Below, piece after piece: positions 13,370 to 42,205 of a DNA stretch of 64,000 bases; position 1 is the first letter of the stretch; each line of letters opens with the position of its first letter. A model generated the notes under the pieces. That model saw only the letters and a program-made list of their open reading frames with translations. It was not told the origin of the DNA and searched no databases. The stretch is from Ylistrum balloti (taxonomy: Eukaryota): the NCBI RefSeq assembly GCF_031769215.1, contig NW_026782782.1, forward strand, positions 124,001 through 188,000, in the 5' to 3' direction. Position numbers and translations under genes: made by a program.

Positions 13370-16300
13370 ATGTATGGATTTGTGAAAAGAGATGTCAAGA
13401 GCAGTGTGTACAAAGCAGTTTCAGATTTTCTTGTGAAAAATTCAGCAGATGATTGGAGAAAGTTGCCAGCCAACTCAGCGTCATTCCAACTCATGTTTGG
13501 AGAAAGGAATAAATTGCCATTCGGAAGACTAGGTATATGTAAAAATCATAATTGTACAGGTGTTCAGTATTAACTTTATTTATTTGAACAGATATATGAG
13601 TTGTGTAACAAAGGTAATTATTTTTCACTGCATTCACTCTGAATCAAACCCCCAAGACCTCTGGCTGAATAGACAAACACTTGAAGTATTCTACCAAATG
13701 AGTTCAAAATCTCTTTTAGATCTAGTTCTTAGCAGAAGAAAATCTTTCTTCAATTTCTCTTTTAATATGGGAATTCTACATGTAATTCCAAAATTTAGGA
13801 CCTTCCAAATCAGTATTTCCTGCATAGATTTTTTTAAATTCTGTAGCTACTTTTATTTGTGTATGCTTGTGGACTTGAGAAATTTCTTTCAAATATCAAT
13901 GTACATATTTTTGACATGCATTCTAGTTTAGAAAGGAAAATCATATAAAAAGAAGGTTACATACATCCTTAAGTAAACTCCATATGCAGCGTGAAAAATG
14001 TAAATTTGTATCTTCCAGGACATGACCCCGGATTGGTACAACTGGTTAACTACTACAGAGGGTCAGACATTCTCTGTAGGAAGACAGCTATGGTCAGGTA
14101 CAAAGTAACTGTTACATAGAATATGAAATCAAAATGATCTACCTTATTGAAAACCAAATATGTAGCCTTAACCTACATATCCATGTCTTCAAACATGTCA
14201 TACTTAGTTATGACAAACAAGGACCTCATATTGGTGTCATCAATGATCAATTCTTTATACCAGTAACAGGTAAATTAATTATTCTAAAGACATGGTCTGG
14301 TCTGGCCTGGTTACTGACTTGTTATGACAGACAATTTTTTTTTTTTTTTTTTATTATTTTAAATGTTTTCATTTTATTAACTTAGTGACACAAATTGTAG
14401 ATACCATATTTAGATAATTTCATTTGTTTTACTTCATTTTTCTAAAGTTAACTAACATTTATGAATCAATGTGTTGTTTTTCTTTTTCTTTTAGATTATT
14501 CAAGGATTTCTACAAATCCACTGCAAAGCCAGCTCCTAAATGGTTACCAGAGTCCTTTATACTTTGTCCAAAAGATATTACAAAAAACTTGCAGAAAGCA
14601 GGTGAACATGGAGCTGTATTACTACGCAAGTCACCCAAACCTGATGAGAGGGAAGACTTTATAAAAGCAGCTGAAAAACTGGCAAAACAAGAGGCAAAAC
14701 CTGTTATATGGATAGCAAAATCTTCAGCGGGCTCAAAAGGTACTGATGTTTTATTTGCTTAGGAAGTATTAGCCATTTAAAATGCCTTCCAGTTAACAGA
14801 TTGTACTAATGACGTCATATTGGGATGTAAATAGCAAAACTTTGGAATACTTTACAGGAGATACAATCACAGGAAACATGTGATCTCATTAGCTTGTACT
14901 GTAACTTCCTCGTGTGGAATAAGACCTTCTAGATGTTTAAACAGATGTGAAATTTCAAATCAAAGGACCGGGCACTGATATAGGTCAATTGGTAAATAAT
15001 TAGACTTAAGATCATGTTAAGATCTATGGTAAGTGATTTGACTCTAGTGGTTTATTTTTCTCAGGAAACTGAAATGTTGTTGAAATATTGATTTGTCCTT
15101 TGGCAAGACACTTTACCCTAATGGCTCAGGATGAAATGTTATGGTTCTCCTGTATGTTGCTCAGTGGAGTAGTCACCAGCTACTTCAAGGATGCCCTGTC
15201 GAAAAATCACCCTGGCTGTCGAGGGGCAAGCAAACATTCACATCAAATATGTTATTGACTGAAACGCTGATCCATACTTTTCAATAAATGACATGCTTGA
15301 TGTGCATATTTGTTTGCCTCTCAACATCCAAGGTTGATATGTGTTTACAGTAGATAAAGAAAGTACTGATATCGACAGCCTGCATTATTCTTTCTGCAGA
15401 ACACCTATTTATTATGACATTTATTTTTTTCTTTTATTTACTTTATTTATCATAAACATTTTCATACATGCAAAACAAAAATTCAAGAAACAACCTTGCA
15501 AGCTTCATGCACATCATCCTTGATATCATTGTTGTTGTCATTAATGTCATTGTCTTATCACCATTATGTCATCCTCCTTCTCATCATCGTCATGACATTT
15601 ATATGATATTTCACTTACATCAATGAAAAAAGTTATGCTTACACATGATATATTTTTCAGGTTGTTGATACTACATGGTAATCCTGAGAGAAGTCTTTGT
15701 ATTCTGTGTTTCCTCTGTTTTAGGAGAAGGAATCATGATATCAAGTAATCCTGAGGAGCTGATACAGTTTGTAGATACACAGACACAAGGATTCATCGTC
15801 CAGAGATATATAGAAAAACCTTACCTGCTGAAAGGCGACAGAAAGTTTGATATCAGGTAAATGCTGTTTAAGTATTATATCTATCATAACTAGTCACTGA
15901 AGTGGCGCCAACCTCTAGACATCTGATATTTGGACAAAGCCCACAAATCCAGAGTAACAGGTTGCATGAAAGGGTCATCATGGAAAAAGATGGTATAATC
16001 AATTCTATTGTATAGTTGTATAGTGTTCAGGAGAGGTTCTATCTCATGTTTGAACATTTTCACAATAGTTAATCCAAAAATTTGGAATTTTAAAATCTTG
16101 AACAAAAATCTAGAAATATGCGGTGATTTTTGCATTTTTTTCCCATATTTGAGCTTGTCAACTCTATGAGCAACATCAGGTTGATCTGACAAAATCAGGT
16201 GAGTTGGTAATACCGTTAGTGCCCTAGAAAAGATTCCAAAATTGATCACTAACTATTTAAAGCTTAATGTTTGATTTGATCATCATGTTACAGAGGTACT

Positions 16301-19300
16301 GAATTAGGGGATAGAGGTGCTTATGACAATCCATATAGTATTACACATTTGAAGCATGATTAATATCTGTATGTGTATGCATTGTAAGATTGTAATTTGA
16401 ATACAGTGTATGGATTGGCACTGACATAATTTGGAGAGAAACATGACATTTACACCATATCATGACAGTGAAAAGAGTTATGGGTATTGTCATCCCATTC
16501 ATACTACTTGGAGGTCTTTTTTCTGAGGGGATGGTATTGTTTTTCTGTTATGGCTATTATTGGTGCATGGGTTTATCACCAAATATTCAATTTGCATGGA
16601 TACAATACTACAGCGTAAGATGCTGATAGAAATCCTGACCCTAAAGCTGATGATTTAGGCTGTAGGTGCCTACTACCATTATTATATTATTGATCTATTG
16701 GTAACATGGTTATGTGTTGATACCTTTGTCATGGGGTTATTCTTTTTCAGAATGTTTTTACGTGAGGGAGAAAATTAGATATCAAGTATCTTTATAAAGT
16801 CAGAAAACAGGACAATACCATTATTGTATTTTATACAGCATTTTCAGATTTTTCAGCCAAATAGTTGTAATAAACAGGATGTGAATCCAATCGGTTCTTT
16901 GTGATATCCATTGATATCCAGGATGACTGGTACCAGCTACAACTTCATATAAGTTATCAACTCACAGAGACAGATGATAAGATGATGATATGAGGAGATA
17001 ATGTAATCCTGCTTAAATACTAGCAAGCAATATACTGCTTGGCTAGAGAGAACTTCTCTTTAGCTTGATCGGGTAAGCGTCAGATTAGTAATCCAGGTAT
17101 CCCAGGTTCCCATCTCCTCGTGAAAAAGGAGGTGAGGTTGGATGAGGGGGTATTTCTTGCCTCAACTGAATTCAATTGTAACAGAAAAAAATTTCAAACT
17201 TGGAACGTTTATTGATGTTTTCTACAGTGAACTGTTGACCATGAAATGTTATACAGAACTGAAAATTATTGCTTTTCCATCATGTCATTATGTGTTAAAT
17301 TTGGCTGTAATCATTAGTGTAACCATTCGGATGAAATCAAAAAGCATTAAAGGTGTAACATGTATTCCAGTGAATCAGGATTTGATTTGATATATCCCAG
17401 TCAGTTTACCATTTGTCATTGTTTTGGCCAGTTTACACTTTTCTATCATAGTATGCAAGCTTATAACATTTAATGTATGAGGTTTTTGGGTCACAAACAT
17501 GTTTTCGTTTTGTTTCCAAAAATGAAATCAAACAAAATCCACCAGGAATATTACTAGCTATAGGAATATGTTCCATGTTCATCCGTGTCGCCTCGGTGAT
17601 AAAAACAGAATAAGAATGATTCTAACTTATTTCTTCATTTTTTATGTTGCTTCAGTTTTTATCACCTTTGAAATTAGATGCAGCAGCAAGTGTTCCAAAT
17701 GACCTATGTTATTGAAATAAATATTCAATACAATACTGTTTGATAAAGTTGAAGTGCTATGTTTGAAGTGAGTATTTAGGAAATCACATGGGCAGTGCTA
17801 TATTAATATATAGACTAGGTACCAGGATATATTATCTAAAATATCAGATCTAGTTTGAAATCCTGAAACAATCTTTGTGACTAATACAACACATGAAATG
17901 ACACGTGATAATAGAACAACAATATTATAAGAATAATCATCATATCAAATTTATTACAACAAAAGTGCCTGCATTACATATAAGCTCATCTGAAATGAAA
18001 ACATAATGACTATTAAAGAAGAGCACTACAAATTTTGTGAATTCCCACCAAGGATTCGCTTCATCAGTCAAGGATTTTTTCAATATTTAGCATTTTACAA
18101 CAGTTTACTATAAGTTTTACAATAGTGAATGCAAAATCACAGAAGTTTTACAGGAAATACTTGGCTGAAAATGCAATAGATGTAGAATTACTAACATGTA
18201 CATTATAACATCTGCTAGATATATGCATACCAAAAAAGCTGTTATGAAACAGATTTGTACAATAAACAATAACAAAATCATTTTTTACACAACAAAAAAA
18301 ATCATGAGCATGTGTACTATTACAAATATATCAAAACACAAGAATGTATTATTACAAAACATTGCAAAACACAAGAATGTTTTATTACAAAACATTGCAA
18401 AACATAAGACATTTATTATTACCAAACATAGCAATACATAAGAATGTGTTATTGCAATACATAAGCACTGTATTATTGCAAATTATTACATAACATAGGC
18501 AAAACATAAGACATTTATTATTACAAAATATAACAAAGAATAAATAAATACTACTACAAAAGGTGACAGAGTAAGACATTTACTCATTACAAAAAAAGGC
18601 AGAGCATAATATATTTATTATTACATAATAAAACAAAGCATAAGACATATTTTAGTACAAAATAAAGCAAAACATGATATTTACTGTAAAAAAATATTTT
18701 CTAAAAATGAGATATGTATGGCTGTGAAAGAGCACTAAATTTTAAACAAAAAATTGAGAATCAGAATATTAAACACCCCTCCAGAGAACACTGTAGTTGG
18801 TTGTAGACATCCTTGCTAGTTCATCCGTTTCCACACTCATTCCTGCTGTGACTGGCATCTCCAAGTCCATCTCTCCTCCCAGGGATGAGAGGATAAGGGC
18901 AGATAACTCCTGGACCTGGTATTGCTTGGTAGATCTGTACTGGTCAAACATCTTGCGAACACCCTGGATGATGGACTTACGGGTCAGTAGGTGGAGGACT
19001 AGGCTGTGGGCATCGTCTATTGTAGATAGAAAGACCTGGCGGTCAAGGCGGATCAATTGGTCATCTGGAATGAAAAAAAAATTTATTGTACACTATTTAT
19101 GTCCAGAGGATCAAAACTGTCATATATAATTATATTTATCCATTCTCCTGATACACAGTAGCCATTGGGATTTGAACTGAAGAAAATGTGTATCTATGCA
19201 TGAAATGAGTTTTTCAGGGTATGGCAAAATGATTATTTTAACAATAAGCTATTTATTCTTTTTGATTTATGACTTGAAAAAAAAACTAGTGAAAAATTTA

Positions 19301-22300
19301 TATTTTAAATGATTATAGTTACCTAAGAAGTGAACCTGCTTGGCAGCTCTATCATGGGCAATTAGAAGACTGTGGAGTTTCTTGGCATAGCAAACAATGT
19401 CAGGTGTTGGCAACTCAGCCATGGTGCAGAGTAGAGGTCAACTGGTGGTAAAGTAGATGTTGAGAAGTTGGTAGTGATGATGCTAAGGCAATATTGATTT
19501 CAACTTAGAAAAAAAATGATTATATAGACTCTGCTTACTTGTGATTGGTTGCTTCAATTGGTTACTTGATTGGTTGCTTAGAATGGACTCCACCTACACT
19601 TGAATGCAAAAACAAGCTTTTCATGATGTCTTAAAGGAATGTATGTGTTAGAAGTGTTCACTTCTGATAAGATCAAAGGTCTCTTGTCCAGGCATGGCTT
19701 GGTGTTACGGTACAGGTAATGAGGTCAGAGGTGGTAATGTAGGTCAGATCAAAGGTCTCTTGTCCAGGTATGGCTTGGTGTTACTGTACAGGTAATTAGA
19801 TTAGAGGTAGTAATGCAGGTAAGATCAAAGGTCTCTTGTCCATGGATGGCTTGGTGTTACTGTTCAGGTATGAACGTCAGAGGTGATATTGGAGTGAGGA
19901 TCAAAGGTGTCTTGTCCAGGTATGGCTTGGTGTTACTGTACAGATAAGTAGATTAAACATGGTATTATTGGTAAGATCAAAGGTGTCTTGTCCATGTATG
20001 GCTTGGTGTTACTGTACCGGTACTTAGATTAGAGGTGGTAATGGAGGTAAGGTCAAAGGTCTCTTGTCCGGGTATGGCTTGGTGTTACTGTACAGGTAAT
20101 TAGATTAGAGGTGGTAATGGAGGTAAGGTCAAAGGTCTCTTGTCCAGGTATGGCTTGGTGTTACTGTACAGGTAATTAGATTAGAGGTGGTAATGTAGGT
20201 AAGATCAAAAGTCTCTTGTCCAGGTATGGCTTGGTGTTACTATACAATGTGTACAAGATGGTTGTATTCAAGAATTGAGAACAACCAACAAAATTCTGGT
20301 AAATGTCGCGGTATAAAAACATTGTAGATTATTCCAACTTGAAATTGTATCTCACCTAATCTTTAACATATAAATATGAATTTATCATAACTAAGTATAG
20401 GTTATCATACTGTGTATTAAAGTATAGAAACAGTCAGATATAAAGGCATTAGACAGTCTCAACGACAATGTCCCCTATGCAATAAGTGATGATATCAAGA
20501 TGAAACTCATTTCATTTTGTCATACCCAGTCTACTAAGACCTCCAAACAAAATATATCAAACCCTGGTATTTCTGTCTTCCATCTGAATTCAAATTTACT
20601 TAATTATTCTCATGCATAGATGAGAAACCTTAAATAAGTATTTATTACAAGCTACGTCTAAATGAAAATATGTCTTAAATATCAACTGTGTAAATGTTTC
20701 ACTGACCATTATATGTTTTCTTTTGCATGTTGATAAATGTTATGTTCTCCACCATCTTATGATCATTGAATGAAATATTTACCTATATGCATATTGTATC
20801 TTATATGCTATTTGAAGTTGAAAAGTAAAGAAATAGGAAAAGTAAATGTAATTCCAATAGAGATAGTAATGGCAAAAAGATTTTAGGTGTCTTGTCCAAG
20901 TATGGATCGGTGTTACTGTTCAGGTAATTAGATGAGAGGTGGTAATGGAGGTAAGATCAAAGGTCTCTTGTCCAGGTAGGGCTTGGTGTTACTGTACAGG
21001 TACTTAGATTAGAGGTGGTAATGGAGTAAAGATCAAAGGTCTCTTGTACAGGTATGGCTTGGTGTTACTGTACAGGTAAGTAGATGAGAGGTGGTAATAG
21101 AGGTAAGATCAAAGGTGTCTTGTCCAGGTATGGCTTGGTGTTACTGTACAGGGAATTAGGTGAGAGGTGGTAATGGAGGTAAAATCTAAAGAATCCTGTT
21201 CAGGTATGGATTACTTTAACCAATTTATGATGACAAGAATACCGGTATGTCCATTTCTTTATGCAAAGTATTTTGACCAATTTTGTGGAGTAACATTTTG
21301 TTAAAACATCACTAGTGTAAAGAATTATATTGTAAGAGACATTTACACCTTTATTACTATGGCAGTTTCTATTCCAAACTATGTGTTTGGTTTAGATCAC
21401 TTCCCCTACCCTCATAACCATAGTGATATAGAATTTGTTTGCTTGGTCACTCTGTAGGTTGGCAATTATGGTGTAGGTTTTACTATTCTCATTCTCTACA
21501 CTAAAAGGACTTATTGAATGCAATGAGATTTTAGAAACATGAACAAGAGTTGGTCATCGGTTATATACCATCTTTAGTATATTGAGATTACAGGTCTAGT
21601 TTGTGATGGTGGAAATTGCATATGAATATAAGATCTGGTTTCAGATAAATCATTATACATGCTTCCAACACATCTTAACACAATTCTGAAGGCGTAACAG
21701 TTTAATGGCTGATATTTTAAGCAGTTGCTTTAACTTTTGGAATAACCTCTGATAGGACTACTAGTTTAAATGACAGTACTTACAAAAGATTTTTTTTTGT
21801 GTTGACATGTCCACAGAATCTGCTGATCCTTTACAGTTTTACTGTTGAAATCCTTGATTCTCGAATTTTTTAAAATTTTGTTTCAAAATTTAAGGTTCTG
21901 TATCTTTCCCAGGGGTGACAGTTACAGGAAATTGCTATTGACAACTTCTCTTTCAATTTCCTTGTTAAATTTTGACTGTTGATTGTTTGACAGGTTTTGC
22001 TCCATTAACAGGTATATGATACTGTTTACTTGTTATCTAAAGGCTACCAGGGGCAGATCCAGGATTTCGACTTAAAGAGGGCAAACTAAAACATCTCTCT
22101 GTACCCCATATCTTAACTACCCCTTTATTAGCTCACCTGGCCCAAAGTGCCAAGTGAGCTTATGCCAAAGCGCAATGTCTGTCGTCTGTCCGTCCTGTGT
22201 ATGTCAAGTTTTCATTTAAACAACTTCTGAAATACGGAAAGGTGTAGTTATCATATTTGGATGGAAGATTCCTTTGATGAAGCCCAACAAAGTTTAAAAA

Positions 22301-25300
22301 AAGAAATGACGTTGACCCATCTTCAAATGTGTTAAACCTTTAAATGACATTTTCTGATTATCCAGAACATCTAGGATAGTGGTATTATTCTGAAATGGGT
22401 CCTCCATATGGAGTAATTTATTATATTGCTTTAAGCATCTACTGTAGAACATATGCAAAGATATAGTATTGTTGGTCATAAAGATCCAGACGAGCGATAC
22501 AGGCCCTCGGGGCCTCTTGTTTATAGTTTCTGATTCTAATTCTATTTTTTTCTTTGATTTTGTTTGTTTATGCAAAAAAAGTGAAGTTCCATGTATGGTG
22601 AAGACAGACAGATGTTTGTCCTTTGTCTAAGACCAGGCATATAGCCAATGAGGTTGCAGGGTCAATGGAAAAGCCCTAGTGAAGGTTTAGGGAAATGATA
22701 TCCTTAAAAGTTTGAAAGACATCAGGATGGTGTGGTGACTATTTTGATAATGAAAATGTTACATAAGAAGCAGGGTACTTCAGTAAAGGTATGTATGCTC
22801 CTAGCCCTGTTGACTGCCTATGATATCCTTCAAAACATCTCTAAATGCTCTTTTTCTTGAGAAGAGCTTTAGAGATCATTCTTATTATATATAGATTGTC
22901 CCATGTGAAAATGCAATTTTTGGACTATGACATCAATAAGATAAAATCACTTGGATTTTGACAGAAAAGGCTTTATGCCTTTATTTCTTGAAAGAAATGT
23001 AGGAATCCTTTCCAAAAACATGCATGCTTCTGTTTTCCTTGGTTCCAATGGTGTTTAGTTTACTTTTGGGTACAAAGGAGAAAATGGTCTATAAAAACAT
23101 ATGTATGTCTTGTATTTAGACAAATAATCAGATTTCATAGGCCAGATTTTAGTGATGCTTTCTTATCCATGTGTAGTTTTGAGATATTTCATCTAGTGCA
23201 TGATATGGCAATGTACAAAGAATAAAATTATCATCATAAATAAATAAATGAAATATATAAACAACAACAATTATCCAATGATTGTTTAGACATTTATTAC
23301 ACATTTGTAGCACTATCACAAACTATTAAAGGTGCATCTGTGATCTGAAAAACCTCAGGACATTCATTAAGTGATTTTATATCAGTTTATTCAATATTAG
23401 AAGTTCTACAGTTCTACAAAAAATGTACAGTAACAGTTACACAATACAGAAATATTTCGACAATAAGAAAAATTACTTAACATACATGATATTTCTGGGG
23501 TTACTTTTATATAAAAGCATCAAAGATTTTAAACAGAAAGACACCCTTACATCACTAGCATTCAATGTAATCAATAGAGCACTGCCTAGACAATTAAACT
23601 GTACATTATTATGAAGTAACAATTTGATATATACGATGATATAAAACTTTTGAGTAATACCACAGTAATTTCAGTTTGCAAGCAGTTCTAAGTAGATAAA
23701 TGTTCAACATCACACACCCCTCCAGAGAACACTGTAGTTGGTTGTAGACATCCTTGCTAGTTCATCTGTTTCCTCACTCATTCCTGCTGTGACTGGCATC
23801 TCCAAGTCCATCTCTCCTCCTAGGGATGAGAGGATAAGGGTAGATAACTCCTGGACCTGGTATTGCTTGGTAGATCGGTACTGGTCAAACATCTTGCGAA
23901 CACCCTGGATGATGGACTTACGGGTCAGTAGGTGGAGGACTAGGCTGTGAGCATCATCCAGTGTAGATAGAAAGACCTGGCGGTCAAGGCGGATCAACTG
24001 GTCATCTGGAATTGAAATTTTTTATTGTACACCATATATGTTCAGAGGATCTCATCACAGTAGCCATTGGGATTTAGAACTAAAATCATGAACAATAAAA
24101 TGTGTATCTATGCATGAAATCAGTTTTACAGGGCATGGCACAGAAACAATAAGCAATATATTATTATTTGTGACTTGAAAAATAATATTGGAAAATTTAT
24201 TTTTTAAATGATTATAGTTACCTAAGAAGTGAACCTGCTTTGCAGCTTTATCATGGGCAATGAGAAGACTGTGGAGTTTCTTGGCATAGCAAACAATATC
24301 AAAAGTTGGCATCTCATCCATGGTGCAGAGTAGAGGTCAACTGGTGGTAAAGTAGAGGTTGAGAAGTTGGTAGTGGAGATGCTGAGTCAGAATTGATTTC
24401 AACTTTGAAAAAAAAATGATTATATAGACTCTGCTTATTTCTGATTGGTTGCTTCAGTCAATTTCTTGATTGGTCACAAAGGATGAATTCAAAATTGATA
24501 GCAAGCTTTTCATGACGTTTTAAAGGAATGTACAGTTATGTGTGAGTAGATAGTCACTCAGGATAAGATCAAAGGTCTCTTGTCCAGGTATGGCTTGGTG
24601 TTACTGTACAGGTAAGTAGATGAGGAAGTGTACTGTAGGTAAGATCAAAGGTCTCTAGTCCAGGTATGGCTTGGTGTTACGTACGGGTAATTAGATTAGA
24701 GGTGGTAATATAGGTAAGATCAAAGGTGTCTTGTCCAGGTATGGCTTGGTGTTACTGTACGGGTAATTAGATGAGGAAGTGTACTGTAGGTAAGATCAAA
24801 GGTCTCTTGTCCAGGTATGGCTAGGTGTTACTGTACAGGTACTTAGCTTAGAGGTAGTAATGCAGGTAAGATCAAAGGTCTCTTGTCCAAGGATGGCTTG
24901 GTGTTACTGTACAGGTATGAAGGTCAGAGGTTATATTGGAGTTAGGATCAAAGGTTTCATGTCCAGGTATGGCTTGGTGTTACTGTACAGGTAATTAGAT
25001 TAAACATGGTATTCTTGGTAAGATCAAAGGTGTCTTGTCCAGGTATAGCTTGGTGCTACTGTACATGTAATTAGGAGGGGAGTGTACTGTAGGTAAGATC
25101 AAAGGTTTCATGTCCAGACATGGCTTGGTTTTACTGTCTAGGTGATTAGAAAGAGGTGGTAAAGTTGGTAAGATCAACAGTGTCTCGTCCAGGTATGGCT
25201 TGGTGTTCCTGTACCGGTAATTAGATTAGAATTAGGTTGGGACTTGGTTGTGCATTGTAAATTTTGAACTTCATTTTCAAGATGGCCTGTTTGATTCTGA

Positions 25301-28300
25301 ATTTCATTCAATATATAAATTTTTGGCCAAACAGCATGTTTACACATACAAGGTACAATATATGTGTGAAATACAAGATTCTTAGCAAAGGAAGTGAAAA
25401 ATTAAGTAAGAAATTAATCCTTAACTTATTTGACTCAACAATAAATTTATCTAGTTGACATAATTCTTTTGTATTTTCAAATATAGAGTTGATTGACCTC
25501 ACCAAAAATCACCAAATCCTAAACCAAATAATAGATTGTTTACATATTGCATCCATTTAAAACTGGTTCCTGTTCTCTTTTTCAGTGGAAAATGATATCC
25601 ACTATTCAAAATACAGTTTTCAAAATCAACTTATTTTGACCAAGTTTCCAAGAATTAAATTTACAGTGTACATAACATGTACTTTTCTTTTTCTTTATGT
25701 AGTCTCTTACAGAAATTTAAATATCTATCTTTTGCATCCAGGACCTCCATGATTCACATGCATAACACAATATGCTGCTCTCATATGTATCATATATATG
25801 TAACATTGTTAGTTCATCAAGCCTGAGCAAAGCCAGACAAAGTTTGTGAAAAGAAATGACCATGACCTTTATTCAAGGTCACAGGGGTCAAATTTGTTAA
25901 AAACGTGAAACAACTTCTCATGAACGAATAGGCTTAGAGACATGATATTTGCCTAAGCCCTGAGGTGAGCCCTACAGGTCCATTAGGCCTCTTGTTTAAC
26001 CTTAGGTTTGCATATTTTGAAAGTAAAGCGAACATTGCTTCTGGATACTGTTGAATGCATTGTTATACTTTATAAACCCTGATATATGTCGATTGATCAC
26101 CACTGATTTGCCATATTTCATCCATATTTTCCCATCCTTGGGAAATTTTGTCTTATCAATATCTACTATGAATTTCCATTGTTCATCATAGCTAGCCAAA
26201 TAATCTAACAACTCTTTTTAACCTTCCACTGTTTCCGAGAATAACACTAGGTCATCTGCATATAGCATTAAGATTAGATACAACTTTAAATGAAAAGTGC
26301 TTAAAAAACATCTACATACATTTAAAAAAGTATCAAGAGATAAAATTAACAACTGTCATCAACATCAACATGGATAAAATCTGAAAAAAGCACCATTAAA
26401 TCTTAGAGAAGATGATATGTTTTTATATACTGTCTTTATAATTCACAAAATTTGCATCTAATATCTAATTTAGACAATTTATACCATAAATAAATTAACC
26501 CGATCAAATGCATTTCTAAAATCAACAAAAAAGGAATAAAGTCATATATTTCACATAATGACATTGAAATAATTGAATAGCATCTAGAATGCTATGTATT
26601 GCCAGGAGGAAAACCAAAATGGGATCACTGATAATATCACCTGACTCTGATATATATATCAATATTGTGATCAATATAGATGTAAACAATTTACCCAGAC
26701 AACTACGTAAATACCTTGGACATTATTGGGTTCAGTTTTATTTTTTTTTGTTATTACTGCAACAGACCATTTTGAAGGAAAACAGTCAGAGTCTAAAATT
26801 CAATTAAATGATATACATAATGTTGGTAGTAATATAGCCTTGCCAACTCTAAGATAGTCATTCAGTATCAGAGATAGGGATAGAGTCATCAATCTTGGTA
26901 CATGTAGTGTTAACTTTTCTATTTAACTCATCTTATACCTTGATCAGTACTCATGTGTAGGTGGTCGGGTGGTGCAGTGGTAATGCACTCCTTTCACCTA
27001 GTCGACCGAGGTTCAATTCCCGGAGCGGGTTTCCCGGGGGTACTCTGGTTTCCTCCCACAATAAGACCCTTGCGAGCATTACATCCTGCCCAACAAGAGT
27101 GATTAGAATAAGTTGGCATAACTTGTTTCGCAATTGTTGTAAAATAAATAAAGTTTATATATACTCATATTTAACTTAATGAAAAAGTTTCTTAGCTTGG
27201 AGCAATTCATTTGTGAATTTAGAAACATGCTCATAGTTATCTTTACTATACTGGTTGACATTGTCAGGTAATACTTCTGACTCATTAAAGGTATCATGAT
27301 TAGTGGAGAGAGTACCAGTATCCAAAAAATCTTCATTACATCATCATGCCAGTGATATTTTGTCTGCACAGTATGTGAACAATTGGACACTGTCGTGTAT
27401 AGTACAATTTTTCACTTAATAACATATACTCAACAAAAAAAGAAAAGTTAACATGTTTCCTTGGCGAATACCTGTAAATGAGTGAAAACAAAATGGCGTT
27501 TGTGCAATATTAGAAAATGGTAATGTTTTACATTACAAAATCCAAGGGGGTTTCCAAAATCATTCAAGCGTGAAAGTCTGCGACTAACTTGTATCTTTGC
27601 TTGAATTTCATAAACATTCAAACTGACAACTGTTCCTTAGATCCTTAGGACATAGAAATCACTGAATCTTGCTATCTATCAACTTTATTATTTTGCCCCA
27701 GCTGTCACAAGTACAGAGAGAAAGGGCTGTAGGCATGATCCAGACTGGGGAGTCTTGCCGTCGAGTTGCAAGACATTTTGGTTGCAGTGTTAAGACAGTT
27801 TGCCAGTTGGTAAGTCGTTTAAACCAAACTGGGTCAACATCTGTTCGTCCCCGAAGTGGCTGACCAAGTAAAACGACCGCCAGGGATGACAGTCGTATAC
27901 GATTGATACACTTGCGCAATCGATTCGTAACCGCAGTAGAGACTACAAGGACATTGTTTGGGCATCGTGTGTCTCCCTAAACAGTCCACAACAGGTTGAG
28001 GGCCTACCAAGCACGGCGTCCCTACACTGGACCCAATTTGTTGCGACGTCACCGTAATAATCGGCGTAACTGGACCCATGTTCACCGTTGTTGGGCCTTA
28101 CGACAATGGAACAAGATTCTGTTTTCAGATGAGTCCAGGTTTTTTCTGCAACACAGTGATAGAAGGTTCATAGTGTGGAGGCGACGATGGGAGCGTTTTG
28201 CGAACTGCTGCGTCGCAGAACGGGACCGCTTTGGTGGCAGAAGTGTAATGGGGTAGTATTTGTGGGGGGACTCATACCAGGCTTGTTTTGTTAAATGGCA

Positions 28301-31300
28301 ATTTGACCGGCATTCGATATCAGGACGAAATTTTAAGAACAGTGGTTCTACCATTCTTAAGATGCCATGGCGTTGGCGCCATTTTTCAACAGGATAACGC
28401 ACCAGCGCACACCAGTCGCGTCAGCAGAACATTCTTGCAGCAGAATAACGTAGATTGGCCATCTAAATCACCTGATCTGTCACCGATTGAGCATATCTGG
28501 AATGTTCTTGGGCGACACGTGAGAGAACATCAAAATCAGCAGGCAAACTTGCAGGAGCTGGCCCAAGCTTTGATTGCTGAATGGAACAACATATCTCCTC
28601 GAATTATCCGCTGCAGTTCTGTTTACTTCGCAAACGGTGGCCATTCCTGTTGCTAATGGTGTTACCTTTGAAATTGACCCCAACGTCCAGCCGAATAAAA
28701 TCAACTGAACAAAGTTTTATAATGAATCATGACTGCAGTTTTATCAGAATTGATCAGTTACTTTATTCGTACATGATTGGTAAGCGTTTATGAAGGGGTT
28801 AATTAATTAATCACAGAATAAAGTAGTGTTACCTTTCTTTTTTTGTTTAGTATATATTGCTGGTACAACTATTGAAATCACACATTAACATAGTATCATT
28901 TTTACTGGTATGTTGTCTTACACTTTCTTCTAATTAATACTTCAATTTGTAGCAGAACAAAAGTTTCACGGATAACTTCAGTAACAGAAATGAGGTTCAA
29001 GTCTATCTACTCCTTGAGAATGAATGTTGTGTCTATGTGGAAATACGAAGTATAACCTTTTACTTCCATTTCATAATTATTTGTAATCCAAATATTTGTT
29101 TTTGAGTAAATTTGAGAAAAATATTACATTTCTGTTATTTTTGCAATACACCACTAATGTTCCATAAAGTACAATCAATATATGTGAAACACTCTCATTC
29201 TTAACTGTCATAGTGATTGTTGGATTGATGAATTTAAGGAATTGTTTCTGCATCCTTTGTCTCCTAACGTGGCCGTTAGCAGGTATGGTACTGGACCTGT
29301 GTATAATGTTCAATATGTAATTTATCTATGGTCAAACACACATTTTCTTTTCTTCCCTGGCCTTCTGACACACTGGCCAGTTTTCTATGTGTCTCTTGAA
29401 TTTACCTTCAGAGATTGGTAAGATATGTAAGTTTTACTAGAATTAGCCTTTATACATTCCTTCTGTCAATATTGACTGAATTCTACAACAGTGGATGTGG
29501 TCTTACCCTCTTTCTTCTCCCCCGTCCAATGTACTAGGTCAATTACAATATCTCTCCTTAGGATAATTATAGTTATTTGCAGTGAATCCATGACAGTCTC
29601 AGTCGTCTCTGATATCTTATCGACCTCTTGGCTGTTTATATGATAAATGCATAATGCAGAAATGAAAACACTGAGAAAACAAACAGAAAATATGAAATGA
29701 CATGTATATTTATATTTCAAAATTTAATATACCACTAAGACAATGAAAAACTACACTAGTAACACAACATTATATTACAAGGTACGAGAATTTAGACACA
29801 AAAACATACAATGACAATGTATAACAACAAGATATGATAACAATATAACATTATGACACAGTGGCAAACATTAACAATGACAACAAATCAGCACAACATG
29901 GTAACACAAACATTACAAATTTACACATCATAAAAACAAAAATAAAAGGATAATATACCAACAAAGCACTAGGACACAGAAACACAGGTGTACATTAATG
30001 TCAACAACAAGCACTAAGTTAACCATGAAATTCATATTAGGTATCCTACAGATATAAACAAAGCACTTAACTATACTATAATATTTCATTTACCTAAACA
30101 GTAAACTTACAACAAAGTTTTGGCATCACACACCCCTCCAGAGAACACTGTAGTTAGTTGTAGACATCCTGGCTAGTTCATCTGTTTCCACATTCCGTCC
30201 TGCTGTGACTGGAATCTCCAAGTCCATCTCTCCTCCCAGGGATGAGAGGATAAGGGCAGATAACTCTTGAACTTGGTGTTGCTTGGTGGATCGGTACTGG
30301 TCAAACATCTTGCGCACACCCTGGATGATGGACTTGCGGGTCAGTAGGTGGAGGACAAGACTGTGGGCATCGTCCAGTGTAGATAAAAAGAGTTGGCGGT
30401 CAAGGCGGAGCATCTGGTCATCTGGAATAAAGAGGGAGTTTATATGAAAATTTTCATTGACATGATATTCTATAAAAATACTTGTAAGTTGTATTCTTAA
30501 TAAAAGCCATTCAGAAAAATATTAGATTATATATTACTTATTTTATGTTTTTTTATCATCATGTGTTTTTCATGTGATTATTTTATTCCAAATTGTTTCT
30601 TGTGTACATTCATTTTTTTATATACAAAAATCATTTACTTTTATCACAATGTCATGATATACAGTGTAAATGTATACAGGGAGAATAACATTTTGCCAGA
30701 TTTTGTACATGAACATGGAATCTGTTGTCAGTAAATACACATTACCTTCATAATTTTTTATTGAGTCCTTGAAACAATTTCATTCAATCCTCATATATTT
30801 CATGTATCTGCATGTCTCTGAAGGAAAAAAATCATTTATTGGCTTTTGACTTTAAAAAAGAATGTATCTGCAAAATAATATTAAACATATTAAAAATCTA
30901 ATTTGATTGTTATGTTTGATCCTATTAATAGAAGAAATAGACAAAATAATTGATATTTAAAGTTTAAACCTGATAACATTTATACTTATGATAATTACCT
31001 AAGAAGCTGACTTGCTTGGCAGCCTTGTCATGGGCTAGCAGAAGGCTTTGGAGTTTCTGTGCATAGCAGACAAGGTCAGAAGTGGTCATCTCAGCCATGG
31101 TTCAGTGTAGAGATAAACTGTTGATCAAGCAGTGCCAAGAGATGCTCAGGCAATAGTGGTTTCAATTGGTAAAAAAAATATATTATATAGACTCTGCTTG
31201 CTTCTGATTGGTTAATTCAGTTTATGAGTTTGATTGGTTGTTTGAAATGGACTCCACCTACATTTAGATCAAAAAGTTATAATCATTTTTAATTACACTT

Positions 31301-34300
31301 CAAAGAAAAGTACAGTTAACTGTGAGAATAATGTTCACTCCTGATTAGGTCAAAGGACTCTTAACCAGGTATGGCTTGGTGTTACTGTACAGGTAATTAG
31401 ATGAGAGGTGGTAATGGAGGTAAGGTCAAAGGACTCTTAACCGGGTATGGCTTGGTGTTACTGTACAGGTAGTTAGATGAGAAGTGGTTATGAAGGTAAG
31501 ATCAATGGTCTTTTGTCCAGGTATGGCTTGGTGTTACTGTGCAGGTAATTAGATGAGAGGTGGTAATGAAGGTAAGATCAATGGTCTTTAGTCCAAGTAT
31601 GGCTTGGTGTTACTGTACTGGTAATTAGATGAGAGGTGGTAATGAAGGTAAGATCAATGGTCTTTAGTCCAGGTATGGCTTGGTGTTACTGTACAGGTAT
31701 TTAGATGAGAGGTGGTAATGGAGGTACGGTCAAAGGTCTCTTGTCCAGGTATGGCTTGGTGTTACTGTACAGGTAAGTAGATGAGAGGTGGTTATGAAGT
31801 ACTGTACAGTAGAATACGTACTGAAGGTAGCTTTGACAAGGAATGGCTTGGCGTTACTGTTAATGCACCTTCTGATTTCACAACAAGAAATCTTTAATGA
31901 TATTCACTGGACAATAAATAGTAAGGATTTTTTTAACATATAAAGGAAAGTCAATATACATGTAATCAGAGAAATTATCAGACTATTTCATAATATGAGT
32001 TCTTTTACTCAAGAAAATGGAAACTTCCAGTTATCTTGTCTGATTTACAAGGTATTAAGTTATTTTCTAGAAATACAGTAAAATGGATATAAGTTTATGT
32101 ACCTCCTTCAGCACCAGCACCCACATTGTTCCCTGCATAATGATGGTCCTGTTTAACTTGCTGGAACTACCATACTAGTAAGCTTTGACTCTATGATATC
32201 TTGTTTGCTGAGCTTATTGTCATGTGAGTAAACATATCAGAGATATATCCCCTGATATCTAGGTGTTGTTGTGTTTTGGCTGGGTACATGGTAAATCCAT
32301 TTTGGAATTAGGGCTAGTTTTCATGCAACTGTAGTTTATAATATTTTTGATCGAAATGGGGGACTGATCATGATTGTATAGCACAATTACCCTATTGCTC
32401 TTAAAATTCATTGTATTGTTTTGTAGTATCTGTTTACTGATATTCAGCTAGTAAACAGATTGTAGGGGAGGAGGCTGTATCCGGACTGTCCCTTTATGGT
32501 ATGGACCTCATCTGTTAATCAAACTAATTCTATAACAACTTCATTCTGAGAAAATCCTATTGAAAGGGAACCTAACAATTTACCCTTATGAAAAATCTAG
32601 CCTGTATATTGGGGGACCATTCCCACTTTAATCTACAGTCTTGTAAATTCACAGTAGATTGACCTGTGTGTTCACTGAAACTTTGAAACAGGATATTTAT
32701 AAAATTCACCTCAAATTAATATATTGTTATTTAGTGGGATGGCGACTTTTGGCTTGACTTTGAAAGAGCAATACATCACACCTCTCTGTCCCACCTAAGA
32801 TTCTAATAACTTAAAAAAACAGCCAACTACAATACATATATCGACAGTGTAGGATATTGATACTTTTGTGTTAAAAAGTTTTGATACTTTTAACATCCAG
32901 GAACTGAAATATTTTTTCCTGTGAAGTTATTAAAAGTTTTGGTATAGAAACTTTTCAATTTAACTTTCTACATGATTACACCAGATAACAAGAGAGGCCT
33001 ATATAAATCTTCTCCATAAATCTTCTCCATGGTGGTGATCAAGTCAAAAACTTGCACACCCCTTCTCACAACATTCAACTATACACCATACTATCATTAC
33101 GCAACCACACAAATACACAGTCTTAAGTACTAGCAACTATCAATATAATTCATAAATAAATTCAACTTTTCTGAAAGTATAAATAATATGAAATTAAAAA
33201 ATTAATTTAATCTATTAGGAAAGAGTTTGATTTGCATATGAAATTTATCATATTCCAAAATATAAGATGGTGTTGTTTGTGAAATATGATATTATTGACA
33301 CCCCCATTTTGTTGAATATAAAGTTTAGGATGTAGTGGTATAGTTTAAGTCTTGTATAGGTGGTGATTCTTTTCTTTCCAAACTAAGTCATTACAGACTA
33401 TATCTATGTGGCTGGGTATCCAGACAAAGCATACAATATATATCCACTATTCATAAGTTCGGTATCAAGCTTTTTCGTACTTAATACAGTTGAATTTTGG
33501 ATTTTATACACTGGTGAGGTGAAAGCCGAAAAGGAAGACAATTAAACTACAAAAATTCAGCAGTTTCTCCATTGTTTTAACCTGGTTTGTCCTTTACATC
33601 TGTTTGGTCACCTACCTAGGTACCTTTGCATTACAGCTTTGGGTGACCTATACATCATTCAACTATCATTTTTGTCTTGAAATTTTAAAACCGAGGTTGA
33701 ATACCATTTCTGTATAAGTGTTAGGTGGCATGAAATGGCAGTACACAAAGCTTTAACATTGTTATGTGCTCTAGATACAATACAACACTGTCATCTGCAA
33801 ATTGAGTAGTATTAGTCTGTTGTGGTTAAAGTTGGTGACACCACACTCCTCAGTCAGGGTGGGTAGAGGAGGAGGAGTGGTTCCTTTTCAACAATATAAA
33901 TATTTGAAAAATACTTCCTGTTGAATCTGCCTAATATCTATTTCTTAAAATTATTTTTATGTATGAATTCATATTTCCATGAACAGTAATACCTCTTAGT
34001 TTATACACAAATCCCTCCTTTCATAACAAGTTGAAGGCTTTTTTTCAAAGTCTGTAAAAACAACCATTAAACTCTCTTTCTTTGATATGGCATTTTTAAT
34101 CTCACTCTTTAATTTCATCAGCTGATCTATCATACTGCATGCCTTTTAATACCATAATTTTCCCAAGTATATGTCATTATTTACTGTTGAACAATATTTC
34201 TGACAGTATGTTCAATTGGCATGGGATATTATTCTTTTACACACCGTTTTTTTTTTTTTAAACTGGTATTCAACTTCAAATTCTTTGTTTGTATATGATG

Positions 34301-37300
34301 ATGTGGGCGAACATATAACGGCCAGTTTCTCTGAGTTGGTTCCATGTTATGGTTTAAGTGTGGTGGGAGGGTGATCGGAAAAAGAAGGCTTATTGAAAAT
34401 ATATTTATGAAAGAATAAAAAATTTAATGAGGTATATAGCAGATAAAAATTCACCACTTTACTTGTCTCAAAATTGTGAGTTATTGGGTATATTTATGGA
34501 TTGTTGTTTGTGCCCCGGATCTAACAAATCTATCACATTATTCCATCTCTCTCTTGATAACTGTCAAATGAACATTGAATTACCCGAGATGATGGTGGGA
34601 ATCTTAGGGTAGTGAATTGAGTGATAGAGATTTTATTTAAAATGCAAGACAGAGGTCGAAGGTAATCATATCTACTTTATAAGATAATTAAATAATCTAT
34701 TTCTTATTTAACAGATCCTGGGTCCTACTTGATACCAACTATAATATCTATCTATTTCGGGAGGGTGTACTAAGGACAGCTTCAGAAAGCTACAAAGCAG
34801 ACGACCTTGATGCAACCTTAGGACATCTGACCAACCACTGTCTACAACTTGAGTTATCACCAAACTTTGGGGCATATGAGGAAGGAAATGAGATGTTTTA
34901 CGACCAATTTAACAGGTACGTTTTATTAACTTTAGGGAAGGGGTTTTATTGTTTCAGTGAAAAATGGGAGAAATGTGAATAAAAATGTCCTTCAAAAGTT
35001 AAGATATTATAATAAGATGTCAGCCATCATAAAATTTGATTATCATCAGATGATTGGCTGATCAAGTCACCCAACATCTGTTGTCCATCCATGATCAATT
35101 TTTGATAAAACTTTATCTTGAGAAGATACAGGATGGATCTTTCTTAGATCTCATATAAAGTTTCCCTTGGTCCCCAGTTGTGCACTCTAGATTTTGGGAT
35201 TGATTAGAAAAACAAAATGGCTGAGAACAGGTGGCCATCTTGGATTTTGACAATGAAAGTTTGTTATTGCTTTTCCTCCAGATTCTCTTAAATTCGTTAA
35301 TTTAAGGAAGATAATGGTCCCTTGTGTGTTTTTATTTTTCAACTATTTTATCTTGTCTAGAGTTCCTTCAACCAATTTCTTTTAAACTTTGAATAATTTC
35401 TATAATTAAGACATGAACAGGTACTTATTCACCAGAATGATAATCAGTTATTGCTTTATTTCCATATTTCTGTTCCTTTGGATACATTAGCTATTTTTCT
35501 TTGGCAGAAAAAAGGATGTTCACGTCTTTCAAAATGATTTGACATTATCTGATCAAAAAAATCTTTCTCTTTCTAATTCAAAAATAAGCTATCATATTGG
35601 ATAGATGTGTGATACCCCTCGCCCCCATGCCATCAGACAAAATATGGAGCTTGTGAAAATCCTCATAAGTGTTAATATTACTCATTTATGTATATACAGT
35701 TATGTAACTCATCTAAGTTTGTTTCTATTTCAGATATTTGTGGAAAAAGTCTTCTGTAACCATGGAAGCAGTGATTATACCACAGATAAAAGAAATAATT
35801 AAAACCTGTCTGTCCATAGTAAAAGAGGTTGGTATATTCACGCCCCAGTGATTTTATGAGACTCAGATATTTGAGTCATTGACTCATGATTTTCCTTTGA
35901 TATGCCCTCAAATTTTGAAAACCCACTCTATCTCTAAGTAATGGGACTGATCAGAATTTTAGACATGTTGCGGTGGACCCACTTAAAAGATTCCTACAAT
36001 AATTACTGTACCCATGGAAACACTTCAGTAGCCTTTAAAACCATGACATTGAATTGTGTTTCCTGGAGATGTTTTGGATTCAACAACTTTGTTTAATCAG
36101 CAGCTTTTATCTTGTTTTTAAGCAGTTTCCATCAAACTTCATACCTTTAATAACTATGATAAATGAGATATTTTTCCTGAGATATCTTCACTCAGATTCT
36201 AGGCATCACTTTTCATTTCAAAAATATTTTAATGTTAATGCATACATTTAACACACACATATAACATTACAAACAAATGCAATAACAATTGGGATCAAAC
36301 AACAGGCTAAGCCTATACAAGTTTTTTCCCACAAGATAGCCGGTATTATAATATGTTTTATAATATGGATTGATTAAAGTAGGTAATAGTTTTGAGGTAT
36401 AATAATCACATGTATTAAGGAAGAGAAGAAGAAAAGTACTCACACACAAGGCATCACTTTTAACCTTGGGATGCTTATGACCATGACACGAAGTTTTGGG
36501 CTCTTGAATGACATTTCAATTTGAAATTTTTGTAAAAGTATTTGCCCTTTTGTTTGTTTTAGCTTTGTCATATTTTTTTTTTTTCTTGTCAATTGAATTA
36601 CATTGACTTTATTGACATGGCATGATATTGTGTTTTCTTAGTGGTGATTCAATTAACAGTAGTTTGATACAATAATGTATTTTACTCTGTCATTGTTTTG
36701 CCCTGTATTAGTCTTATTATTGAATTGCGATAATTTTTACACCCTACTTGAGCATTGTACACCAGGCTGAGTTGGCCTGGTGTTACTTATGACCTCTGAC
36801 CTTCGGAAAAGATGTAGCAACATTCTATGGTGAATTCTCTATTACCTTTGACCTTACAGTGTACATATGTATATCTGTAACCTATGATCTTACAGCGTAT
36901 ATGTACAAGTTGTCTTGGATACCAGAGTTTCCAGCTATTTGGCTTTGACTTTATGTTGGATGATGACTTGAAGATCTGGTTACTGGAGATCAATGGAGCA
37001 CCTGCTTGTGCACAGTAAGTAGCAACTACATAGGGGAAATAACTCTAGTATTCCTCAGAAATATATTGACAACCCTTACATCCTTACAAAATATTTTGAC
37101 AGACTTGTCTATTCATTAGAAAGTTTAGGGTACATATAGATATCTTATTATTGTTGTTCTTTCATAACTCCAATATACAGTGACGATTTTACAGTTGTAT
37201 AACATACATTTCAGTATCGTAACCAGATTTCAGTGAGATGATGGTAAATATTATAAAAAAGTCACAAGACAAAACAAATTAAAAGAATTGCTATTTCACT

Positions 37301-40010: not shown

Positions 40011-41201
40011 TTGTAGTTTTGTATTTTTAGTTACTTTAAAAGGAATTTTGTTTTTTATACATTAAGGGCTTTAATACATTCCTTACATTATAGCTAGACT
40101 TTTCTTATACTTTGGCCTAGGTAGGACTTTAAGTGAACATGAGGTATACTCCTGGCACACCAAAAGAAAATTAACCAGCAGTGTAAACAGTTGCTGGATG
40201 TTATAGAAACAAAGTTGTAGGTGACAGTAACAGATGTTTCAGGTCATTTCATGTTTGCTTTGTTTAACTACAGCAATTACAAAGAGGAAACTTATAAACG
40301 ATATCAGCAAAGAGTCTTGGGTGGGGGGGGGGGAAACCTCACTTTTGTTATTTACCTTTTATTTTTATTTTTTTAAGCTATTATACTGGCCAAGCTGTGA
40401 TATATAATGTTTGATGTTGAAGTGATCATGATTATGTTATATGTCAGAAAATAAATACAAATCATATTTGTACATTTGTCTCAACTCTTGTTTATGATAT
40501 TATACTATAAGGAATAATCCCAATACTGCTGTGTAAACAGTAACATTGACTAAAATTAAGCTGAGAAGGTCGAGGTCGATGAACTCACCTTACAAAGTTA
40601 TCGTACCACGTCGTGAACGTGATCAGACGACTCGAATATCACATGACTTTCAACGACTGGGACCAGACTGCGAATGTTGCATAATAAACAGCACAGCTTG
40701 TTAGATAGAGTTAAAGCACCTGGATAATCCCTGTGTGAATCATCTTCTGTAAAAAAACACATCCTGAATATCAATGTGGATTGCATAAGGAAGTACTGCT
40801 TCAATTAGTGTTTTGTCTGAGCCCCCTATTGACATTGGCACATCAAGGTATTCATAGTGCTTTGAACGTGGAAAATTTCAGCAAACATTGATGATACATG
40901 GTGTGTTGGTAATGGGAAATATAAAGTCAATACCTAACCACAATCTGAAGTGTTTGTTTACCCGAGAAACAGTTTGCCTCTACTTATACAAATACAAACC
41001 AGGGAGATATCTTTATCGAGAAAATGTTTGTAAAACATCATTTTTTTTAATTAAGACAGGTATAAGGCGAGAGATATTTGGCTTCAAGTAAGTTACAGTC
41101 TCATAGAGAGAAAACACATTAGATTGCACCAATGTAGCCTGTGTTCTTCATGACATAGTAAGGCGTTTCTCCAAATATTTCGAGGGTCAAGATGCAGTTG
41201 C

Positions 41202-42205
41202 ATTTGATATTTGACCTCTCTGAGCATTCGATATTTGACCTTATTGAAGATTTGATATTTGACCTCTCTGAAGATTTAATATTTGACCTCTCTGAAGATT
41301 TGATATTTGACCTCTCTGAACATTCGATATTTGACCTCTCTGAAGATTTGATATTTGACCTCACTGAACATTCGATATTTGACCTTCCTGAAGATTTGAT
41401 ATTTGACCTCTCTGAACATTGGATATTTGACCTCTCTGAAGATTTGATATTTGACCTCTCTGAACATTCGATATTTGACCTTCCTGAAGATTTGATATTT
41501 GACCTCTCTGAACATTCAATATTTGACCTCTCTGAAGATTTTATATTTGACCTCTCTGAAGATTTGATATTTGACCTCTCTGAACATTCGATATAAGACC
41601 TTCCTGAAGATTTGATATTTGACCTCTCTGAACATTCAATATTTGACCTTCCTGAAGATTTGATATTTGACCTCACTGAACATTCGATATTTGACCTTCC
41701 TGAAGATTTTATATTTGACCTCTCTGAACATTGGATATTTGACCTCTCTGAACATTGGATATTTGACCTCTCTGAACATTCGATATTTGACCTCTCTGAA
41801 GATTTGATATTTGACCTCTCTGAACATTCGATATTTGACCTTACTGAAGATTTGATATTTGACCTCTCTGAACATTGGATATTTGACCTCTCTGAAGATT
41901 TGATATTTGACCTCTCTGAACATTCGATATTTGACCTTCCTGAAGATTTGATATTTGACCTCTCTGAACATTCGATATTTGACCTCTCTGAAGATTTGAT
42001 ATTTGACCTCTCTGAACATTGGATATTTGACCTCTCTGAAGATTTGATATTTGACCTCTCTGAACATTCGATATTTGGCCTTCCTGAAGATTTGATATTT
42101 GACCTCTCTGAATATTCGATATTTGGCCTTTCTGAAGATTTGATATTTGACCTCTCTGAACATTTGATAGTGGAATTCTCTAAACATTTGATATTGAACC
42201 TCTCT
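41202..42205. repeat. 24-bp tandem minisatellite (~42 units)
   Basis: Two main variants, gaagatttgatatttgacctctct and gaacattcgatatttgacctctct; no indels visible. Confidence 0.95.

Follow-up and report, generated by a model that had tools for sequence, protein, structure and literature searches.

Three antisense gene modules in an intron of TTL

We analyzed a 64,000-nucleotide stretch of the genome of the scallop Ylistrum balloti (positions 124001-188000 of contig C925 in a 648-Mb assembly, referred to here as the window) in which three homologous modules lie on the minus strand between positions 18769 and 31799, inside an intron of a gene for tubulin-tyrosine ligase (TTL). Each module consists of a two-exon gene, a promoter with two CCAAT boxes and a TATA box, and an array of 76-bp tandem repeats upstream of the promoter. 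Triplication and nesting taken alone are ordinary; the noteworthy result is the array which, judged by comparison with other scallops, is a deeply conserved and locus-specific run of composite units with an optimal TCF/LEF-type site.

The coding part of exon 1 of copy 1 occupies positions 19323-19422 (100 nt, with the donor TTAG/GTAAC) and exon 2 positions 18769-19064 (296 nt including the stop codon); the corresponding exons, of the same lengths, are at 24222-24321 and 23710-24005 in copy 2 and at 30999-31098 and 30126-30421 in copy 3. All three first exons have their ATG in the context CACCATGG and end in TTAG/GT, and the introns (258, 216 and 577 nt in copies 1 to 3) are of the GT..AG type, are in phase 1, and have 3' ends reading TTCCAG. 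Joining the translation of exon 1, the aspartate (D) of the split codon, and the translation of exon 2 gives exactly the 131-residue "uncharacterized protein" models of NCBI for every copy (P0001, P0002 and P0003 for copies 1 to 3), and AATAAA or ATTAAA signals follow 150-400 nt past the stop codons. An initial annotation of this stretch had proposed three minus-strand genes with identical exon sizes, a common splice phase and good start contexts, and its coordinates match ours base for base.

Copy 1 has its CCAAT boxes and TATA box (GTCTATATAA) at positions 19519-19575 of the minus strand, including a 30-nt promoter core at 19519-19548; the same core, running from CCAAT to TATA, lies at 24419-24448 for copy 2 and at 31182-31211 for copy 3, likewise on the minus strand. 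This core, which extends from the CCAAT box to GTCTATATAAT, is found at these three positions and nowhere else in the window, the expected number being 0, and the second CCAAT box is 20-30 nt upstream of the one within the core. The conservation of a TATA box with twin CCAAT boxes, also proposed initially, extends beyond this genome, since the elements are kept in four scallop genera.

The arrays begin approximately 140-160 bp upstream of the TATA boxes, in agreement with the placement first given to them, and all read from the minus strand. Copy 2 is preceded by 9 units (24564-25231) and copy 3 by 6 units (31350-31799), none of which contains an exact CTTTGAT. The array of copy 1 is in two parts, a proximal one of 8 units of 76 bp (19668-20246) and a distal one of 4 units (20885-21209) that has no gene of its own. 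The initial annotation had one array per gene and missed this fourth block of repeats, which is the distal part of the copy 1 array: the approximately 550 bp that separate the two parts are an interspersed repeat (20330-20880) of which the genome contains at least 37 further copies at 65-87% identity, and the copy 1 array was thus at first a single one of about 12 units. No 76-bp array was found elsewhere in the 648-Mb Ylistrum assembly, and this confinement to the locus rules out a genome-wide satellite or transposable element as its origin. Because the period is 76, the array cannot encode a repeat protein in a single frame. A structured RNA was also considered and rejected, as there is no Rfam match over 18000-32500 and two units fold like shuffled sequence on both strands (z +1.26, +0.24).

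The whole cluster is antisense within one TTL intron of about 18.85 kb, as had been claimed, with plus-strand TTL exons on both of its sides. The exon to the left of the intron (15723-15860) matches positions 79-121 of PF03133, and the exon to the right (34713-34925) matches residues 202-271 of tubulin-tyrosine ligase in solved structures (E 1.8e-26). A further plus-strand exon with a TTL-domain match is at 36908-37018.

Conservation of the genes and their arrays

Orthologues of 131-132 residues with 80-85% identity are present in Pecten maximus, Mizuhopecten yessoensis and Argopecten irradians; Pecten has at least 5 or 6 copies, in both orientations, and Argopecten has 4. Among 15 pairs of Ylistrum and Pecten copies, analyzed by the Nei-Gojobori method for each exon with the split codon skipped, the ratio of non-synonymous to synonymous substitution rates (dN/dS) is 0.14-0.22 in every pair. 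The comparison of dN/dS between copies that had been proposed as a check thus gives values well away from 1 and indicates purifying selection. Synonymous divergence (dS) is 0.14 between copies 1 and 2, 0.40 between these and copy 3, and 0.55-0.62 between Ylistrum and Pecten. A tree of exon 2 groups the copies by species with support of 0.97-1.0, which together with the dS values fits the idea of a family expanding within the TTL intron; the grouping could reflect either lineage-specific duplication or homogenization by gene conversion. In Pecten, the copies PmB and PmC (locus L006) have nearly identical exons (dS 0.056), promoters with an identity of 0.84, and introns at 0.53, which is the random baseline, a pattern that suggests either gene conversion limited to the exons and promoter or replacement of an intron.

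Only five family loci are present in the 648-Mb Ylistrum genome, two of them being distant paralogues of the triplet on contigs C146 (130 residues, 40% identity) and C309 (129 residues, 30% identity). They share with the triplet the two-exon build and the position and phase (1) of the intron. With intact reading frames in all copies of four genera, and conserved start contexts, splice sites and poly(A) signals, the triplet is on the strength of these sequence comparisons a set of real protein-coding paralogues conserved in scallops.

A homologous array precedes each orthologous copy in the other three scallops. The units are 71 bp in Pecten (four arrays of 7-8 units in the fetched locus) and in Argopecten (three arrays of 7-9 units), and 62 bp in Mizuhopecten (12 units). 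Orientation of the array relative to its gene is constant, including at the Pecten copy on the opposite strand, which shows that array and gene duplicate as one module. When 94 units from the four genera were cut in register they yielded a 52-nt core whose consensus is identical in Ylistrum and Pecten over all 52 nucleotides and agrees among all four genera at 47 of 52 positions; the differences in unit length are confined to the spacer outside the core. Units of Ylistrum and Pecten are as similar to one another (identity 0.887) as are units within Ylistrum (0.866), whereas identity between genera is 0.49-0.59 in introns and 0.42-0.53 in 3' flanks, compared to 0.43-0.47 for shuffled sequence. 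Homogenization within a genome cannot yield identity between genera in which the neutral yardsticks are saturated, and the core is thus under strong purifying selection. In our view the arrays are very probably cis-regulatory elements that selection maintains for these genes.

The arrays resemble regulatory minisatellites, or variable number tandem repeats, in having units of some tens of bases placed beside a promoter and a copy number that varies across paralogues and species. Such repeats are usually fast-evolving and species-specific, whereas the core of the scallop unit has hardly changed among four genera, and the paralogues have a single site homologous to it.

A second minisatellite, AT- and TG-rich with 21-34-bp units, immediately follows the stop codon in copy 1 (window 18313-18691) and in most orthologous copies of other scallops (L006 2940-3127 and 11269-11519; L018 7986-8788 and 11014-11863; L017 11621-13983). 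The Pecten and Argopecten units look related (TTGTCA..TTGTAAT-type), and the repeat may be a 3' untranslated region element or just reflect a repeat-prone flank. Just past the gene in Pecten there are 2-4 tandem repeats of the final 36 coding nucleotides, stop codon included (L006 11003-11148 and 17117-17191).

A candidate TCF/LEF-responsive enhancer

Read in the sense of the gene, the core ends in CCTTTGATCTT, which is identical letter for letter to a commercial canonical Tcf/Lef gel-shift probe (PMC3057579) and which synthetic Wnt reporters employ as well (PMC8421206). There are 14 occurrences of this 10-mer in the window, where 0.14 would be expected, and all of them are within the arrays. 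The site is intact in all 12 Mizuhopecten units, in 30 of 31 Pecten units, in 17 of 24 Argopecten units, and in 16 of the 21 units that make up Ylistrum arrays 1 and 2. The remainder of the core is conserved to the same degree and includes GTAACACCAAGCC, which is almost invariant, the 8-bp palindrome CTGTACAG, and the motif TACCTG twice. Similarity between the "CAG site" of composite Wnt enhancers and ACAGTAAC in the core was noted, but by the published figures the motif is found about 9 times per kb in random DNA, and we build no claim on it.

Most telling is the presence of the same type of site at family members that have no array. Upstream of each of the two Ylistrum paralogues there is exactly one CCTTTGATCT in the gene sense, at -290 for the C146 gene and at -154 for the C309 gene, the chance of such a site in shuffled upstream sequence being about 0.001 for each in a test made after the motif had already been seen in the arrays; this 9-mer is absent from the 61 kb of the window outside the arrays. 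Orthologues of the paralogues in Pecten and Mizuhopecten contain exactly one site each (-173, -195 and -169) and no copy in the reverse sense, and the C309-type site is inside a 30-nt block that is identical between genera. In the oyster Saccostrea, three tandem copies of the family have twin CCAAT boxes and, near -300, two ATCAAAG sites. The single sites at array-less relatives indicate that a TCF-type site in a fixed orientation and at a fixed distance is an ancestral feature of promoters in this family, multiplied in the main group of scallop genes.

The interpretation that we favor, at a probability of roughly 0.62, is that the triplet represents autonomous genes of a mollusc family driven by a selected tandem enhancer that probably responds to TCF/LEF. 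Each copy would be transcribed on its own from its TATA box and pair of CCAAT boxes, and its array of 6-12 units would act as a multimerized enhancer, in which the copies of the composite site recruit TCF/LEF, and hence beta-catenin, along with at least one other factor on the rest of the core. The outcome would be strong, signal-dependent transcription of the kind produced by synthetic reporters with multimerized TCF sites. A single ancestral site, such as is still present at the array-less paralogues, was presumably amplified in tandem to give the array, and the nesting in TTL would be an accident of position in this lineage. The narrower proposition that TCF/LEF is an operative factor, and the genes consequently targets of Wnt/beta-catenin signaling, we hold to be slightly better than an even bet; what the comparisons show are the gene structure, the selection on the coding sequence, the conservation and locus specificity of the array, the identity of the motif and its traces at the paralogues, whereas enhancer activity, TCF binding, Wnt responsiveness and a role for the protein are what we infer from these arrangements.

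The initial annotation had described a self-contained and independently regulated unit. Its autonomy as a combination of array, promoter and gene under purifying selection is well supported, while independence from TTL is only plausible, on the grounds that the same promoter and array are present in scallops in which no spanning host gene is annotated.

Wnt reporters are by standard design built from multimerized TCF sites in front of a basal or minimal promoter (PMC9285942, PMC8421206). The likeness to TOPflash-type reporters lies in having several to a dozen optimal TCF sites that all point the same way and stand shortly upstream of a promoter with a TATA box, and by analogy the array amounts to a natural counterpart of the multimerized reporter. 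It differs in being natural and conserved, and in that its unit is a 62-76-bp composite with some 40 further conserved bases and lacks a helper site. Known natural Wnt enhancers have dispersed, heterogeneous sites, whereas the scallop array is an exact tandem repeat. In composite natural enhancers other motifs potentiate the TCF sites (PMC8421206), and this would fit the conservation of the whole unit. A bolder version, in which the array is a natural equivalent of TOPflash with an ancestral site amplified to 6-12 units and frozen by selection over the scallop radiation, the genes are high-gain direct Wnt targets, and the hairpin-shaped product is a lineage-specific effector or feedback component of the pathway, is offered only tentatively and seems to us somewhat doubtful.

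If the favored interpretation is true, the array provides an endogenous and sequence-defined candidate read-out of TCF/beta-catenin activity for molluscs, where genetic tools are scarce, and the element could be transferred directly into a reporter. It would also be a natural example of one transcription factor site amplified to a tandem array and then held by selection, with a period that drifts (62, 71 and 76 bp) around a fixed 52-nt core, so that the "grammar" of an enhancer (site number, spacing and partner motifs) becomes open to study with evolution as the mutagenesis.

Several observations weigh against the assignment to TCF/LEF. In addition to the post hoc character of the paralogue test, none of the 6 units in front of copy 3 has the intact site: they read CCATTGATC or CCTTTGACC and are otherwise unchanged in the core, and purifying selection nevertheless acts on the gene. 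Regulation of copy 3 may thus not be the same as that of copies 1 and 2. In Mytilus, a TCF-type site is absent within 600 bp of the family member. The helper motif GCCGCCR is absent from the arrays and has its sole match in the window at 61477, although this motif is relevant only to C-clamp isoforms of TCF and is not obligatory. Finally, the whole 52-nt core is conserved and its GTAACACCAAGCC block varies no more than the TCF site does, such that another factor may be the main one.

The strongest alternative builds on these points: the arrays are selected cis-regulatory or chromatin elements, but the operative factor is something other than TCF/LEF. Candidates include readers of GTAACACCAAGCC, of the CTGTACAG palindrome or of the E-box-like TACCTG motifs, SOX-type high-mobility-group (HMG) proteins, and insulators that shield these small genes from transcription of the host or of a neighbor. 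The invariance of the middle block and the loss of every exact CTTTGAT from a copy 3 array that retains the remainder of the core both speak for this account, as do the binding of SOX proteins to variants of the same HMG-box core that TCF reads (PMC9285942) and the composite nature of natural Wnt enhancers (PMC8421206). However, the TCF-type site is the only element of the core that recurs at the array-less paralogues, at their orthologues, and in the oyster, and it fits the optimal TCF sequence and not the variant preferred by SOX (PMC3057579). We consider this alternative unlikely, while regarding it as the only serious competitor.

On a second reading the module would be mobile, either as an element in its own right or as a gene that such an element has captured, with the arrays as its internal repeats and the intron position as an insertion. 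Family members do lie in differing contexts across species, often antisense in unrelated host introns, the Mytilus member is intronless, and Dcc1, a neighbor of the Argopecten cluster, is on another contig in Ylistrum. However, there are only the five family loci in 648 Mb, with the array at one of them, and no member has a transposon domain (transposase, reverse transcriptase or integrase) or shares a Pfam family with the others. The dN/dS of about 0.2 and the conserved intron phase are those of a gene, and the C146 paralogue is in the same TMEM232 intron in Ylistrum and Pecten, indicating an old and stable position; the actual transposon pieces nearby are separate insertions. This reading is largely refuted and we give it very little weight.

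An equally slight chance attaches to the arrays being functionless minisatellites that travel with the gene and are kept uniform by concerted evolution. In its favor are the duplication of arrays along with genes, the private variants that units of one array have in common, for example in copy 3, and the variation of period and copy number among genera. Concerted evolution cannot, however, hold a consensus identical across genera in which introns are saturated and dS is 0.55-0.62; the changes in period fall in the spacer and not in the core, and a recent introgression of the locus between genera is countered by the dS of the coding sequences. The weakest proposal, that the genes are annotation artefacts or unexpressed relics, draws on the database entries being predicted models and is scarcely credible given intact frames in four genera with dN/dS of 0.14-0.22, the conservation of start context, splice sites, promoter and poly(A) signals, and the presence of the family in both bivalves and gastropods.

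Host introns, protein family and other features

TTL exons were sought at the family loci of Pecten, Mizuhopecten and Argopecten and none were found within the fetched flanks, and the Pecten and Argopecten annotations list no gene spanning the main cluster. Its neighbors also differ, with C1q and Dcc1 beside the Argopecten cluster and Dcc1 on a different contig in Ylistrum. Other members are antisense in unrelated hosts: the same TMEM232 exons flank the C146 paralogue in Ylistrum and its counterpart in Pecten, and another Pecten member is nested in an IFT122/WDR19-like gene (loci L024 and L026). The Mytilus member (L019 6001-6399) is antisense in a Sec7-family gene, and the three tandem Saccostrea copies (L020 1-555, 6001-6604 and 8774-9380) are antisense in an NVL-like AAA-ATPase gene. 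As in nested antisense intron genes generally, the whole Ylistrum cluster is on the opposite strand within one intron of its host, and the TMEM232 paralogue likewise; the host differs among family members and species and no functional link between host and guest is indicated. A lineage-specific relocation or rearrangement best accounts for the presence of the cluster in TTL, and the nesting looks incidental. Overall, five of the eight loci examined are nested antisense in hosts, which seems above chance, although genomes rich in introns and the habits of annotation may account for it.

When 1.84 billion representative proteins were searched with a profile built from 12 members of the family, 125 clusters matched at E ≤ 0.001, of which 32 reach E ≤ 1e-10; proteins of 90-160 residues make up the majority. 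All of the named members are mollusc proteins labelled uncharacterized or hypothetical, and the unnamed ones come from read or metagenome assemblies. The bivalves represented are scallops, Mytilus, Saccostrea, Crassostrea, Pinctada, Mercenaria, Ruditapes, Dreissena, Mya and Potamilus, and the gastropods are Lottia, Littorina, and Haliotis, the last with many near-identical copies. Motifs common to the family are L.LHLL.RKS[IV]..GVR in helix 2 and a C-terminal [FY][CS]x[FL]xR tail, and these essentially match the AH..A..QV...GVR.M.YEY signature that the initial annotation had, correctly, associated with uncharacterized multicopy molluscan proteins; the protein also has a conserved basic patch. 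Its description of the protein as an orphan goes too far, given the two distant paralogues in Ylistrum and the relatives across molluscs.

No Pfam match was found for the exon translations, and 68 members searched singly gave eight unrelated, weak matches to one member each with no family in common. Profiles of the 12 and of the 68 members have no match among PDB sequences, and a literature search with six locus identifiers of the family found no paper. The profile search, together with structure prediction and Foldseek, the checks that had been suggested, thus identified neither a known transposable element reading frame nor a characterized family. These results flag an apparently undescribed, mollusc-restricted but mollusc-wide family of proteins of about 130 residues, with 125 representative clusters that lack a Pfam entry, a solved relative, or a paper found in that search. 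Short ENA and Logan contigs were considered as possible transcripts and set aside, as they are genomic or metagenomic with open reading frame calls that run into intron sequence, and are silent on expression.

AlphaFold2, with an alignment of 68 sequences, predicts a long antiparallel hairpin of two helices (residues 6-49 and 53-94), a disordered linker of low confidence, and a short conserved helix at 115-128, with a predicted local distance difference test score (pLDDT) of 86.3 and a predicted TM-score (pTM) of 0.71; a shallower alignment gives the same topology. The predicted hairpin suggests an oligomerizing or adaptor role. Foldseek searches with two models returned generic hairpins only (best E 0.095), and VIA-align gave Z-scores with little spread (11.8 to 9.9) for 50 proteins unrelated to one another (IpaB, ESCRT-III/Vipp1, prefoldin, SMC arms, ROP and designed bundles), a range that the tool calls uninformative for helical proteins. 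A feature search of the ESM Atlas had a best score of 0.78, under the noise guidance of the tool, and the Atlas shape search returned generic helical rows only.

The N-terminal hairpin of ESCRT-III/PspA/Vipp1 provides the top Foldseek rows, and the hairpin of CHMP4B superposes with a root-mean-square deviation of 1.0-1.5 over 78-79 residues. However, the scallop protein has no similarity to this group in sequence or in Pfam (Snf7, PspA) and no row reaches E 0.001; moreover, ESCRT-III proteins are about 200-240 residues long with helices 3-5, whereas the 131-residue scallop protein is predicted to have the hairpin and one short helix and to lack helices 3-5. The modelled resemblance is a common arrangement and not evidence of kinship, and with all Foldseek and VIA rows being generic hairpins we do not accept kinship with ESCRT-III, prefoldin, ROP or ING and assign the protein to no known family.

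The family is amplified in gastropods also, with clusters from abalones (Haliotis asinina and H. rubra; H. cracherodii and H. rufescens) that contain many near-identical members of 153-158 residues. In a 421-residue protein of Mya arenaria (P0052) the family domain, at residues 269-370, is fused C-terminally to an ankyrin-repeat protein; this is the sole multi-domain context seen, and is a possible hint to partners.

Elsewhere in the window, a DHX57-like gene lies upstream of TTL on the minus strand, with a large exon at 6209-7369 that encodes RWD and CCCH zinc-finger domains. A broken Tc1/mariner-type transposase with HTH_23 and DDE_3 matches in several frames is present on the plus strand at 27669-28656, between copies 2 and 3. 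Further downstream, at 41119-42325, is a coding-like minisatellite with long open frames on both strands, including an open reading frame of 394 codons, in which the predicted repeats are of the SERSNIKSS and SERSNIECS types.

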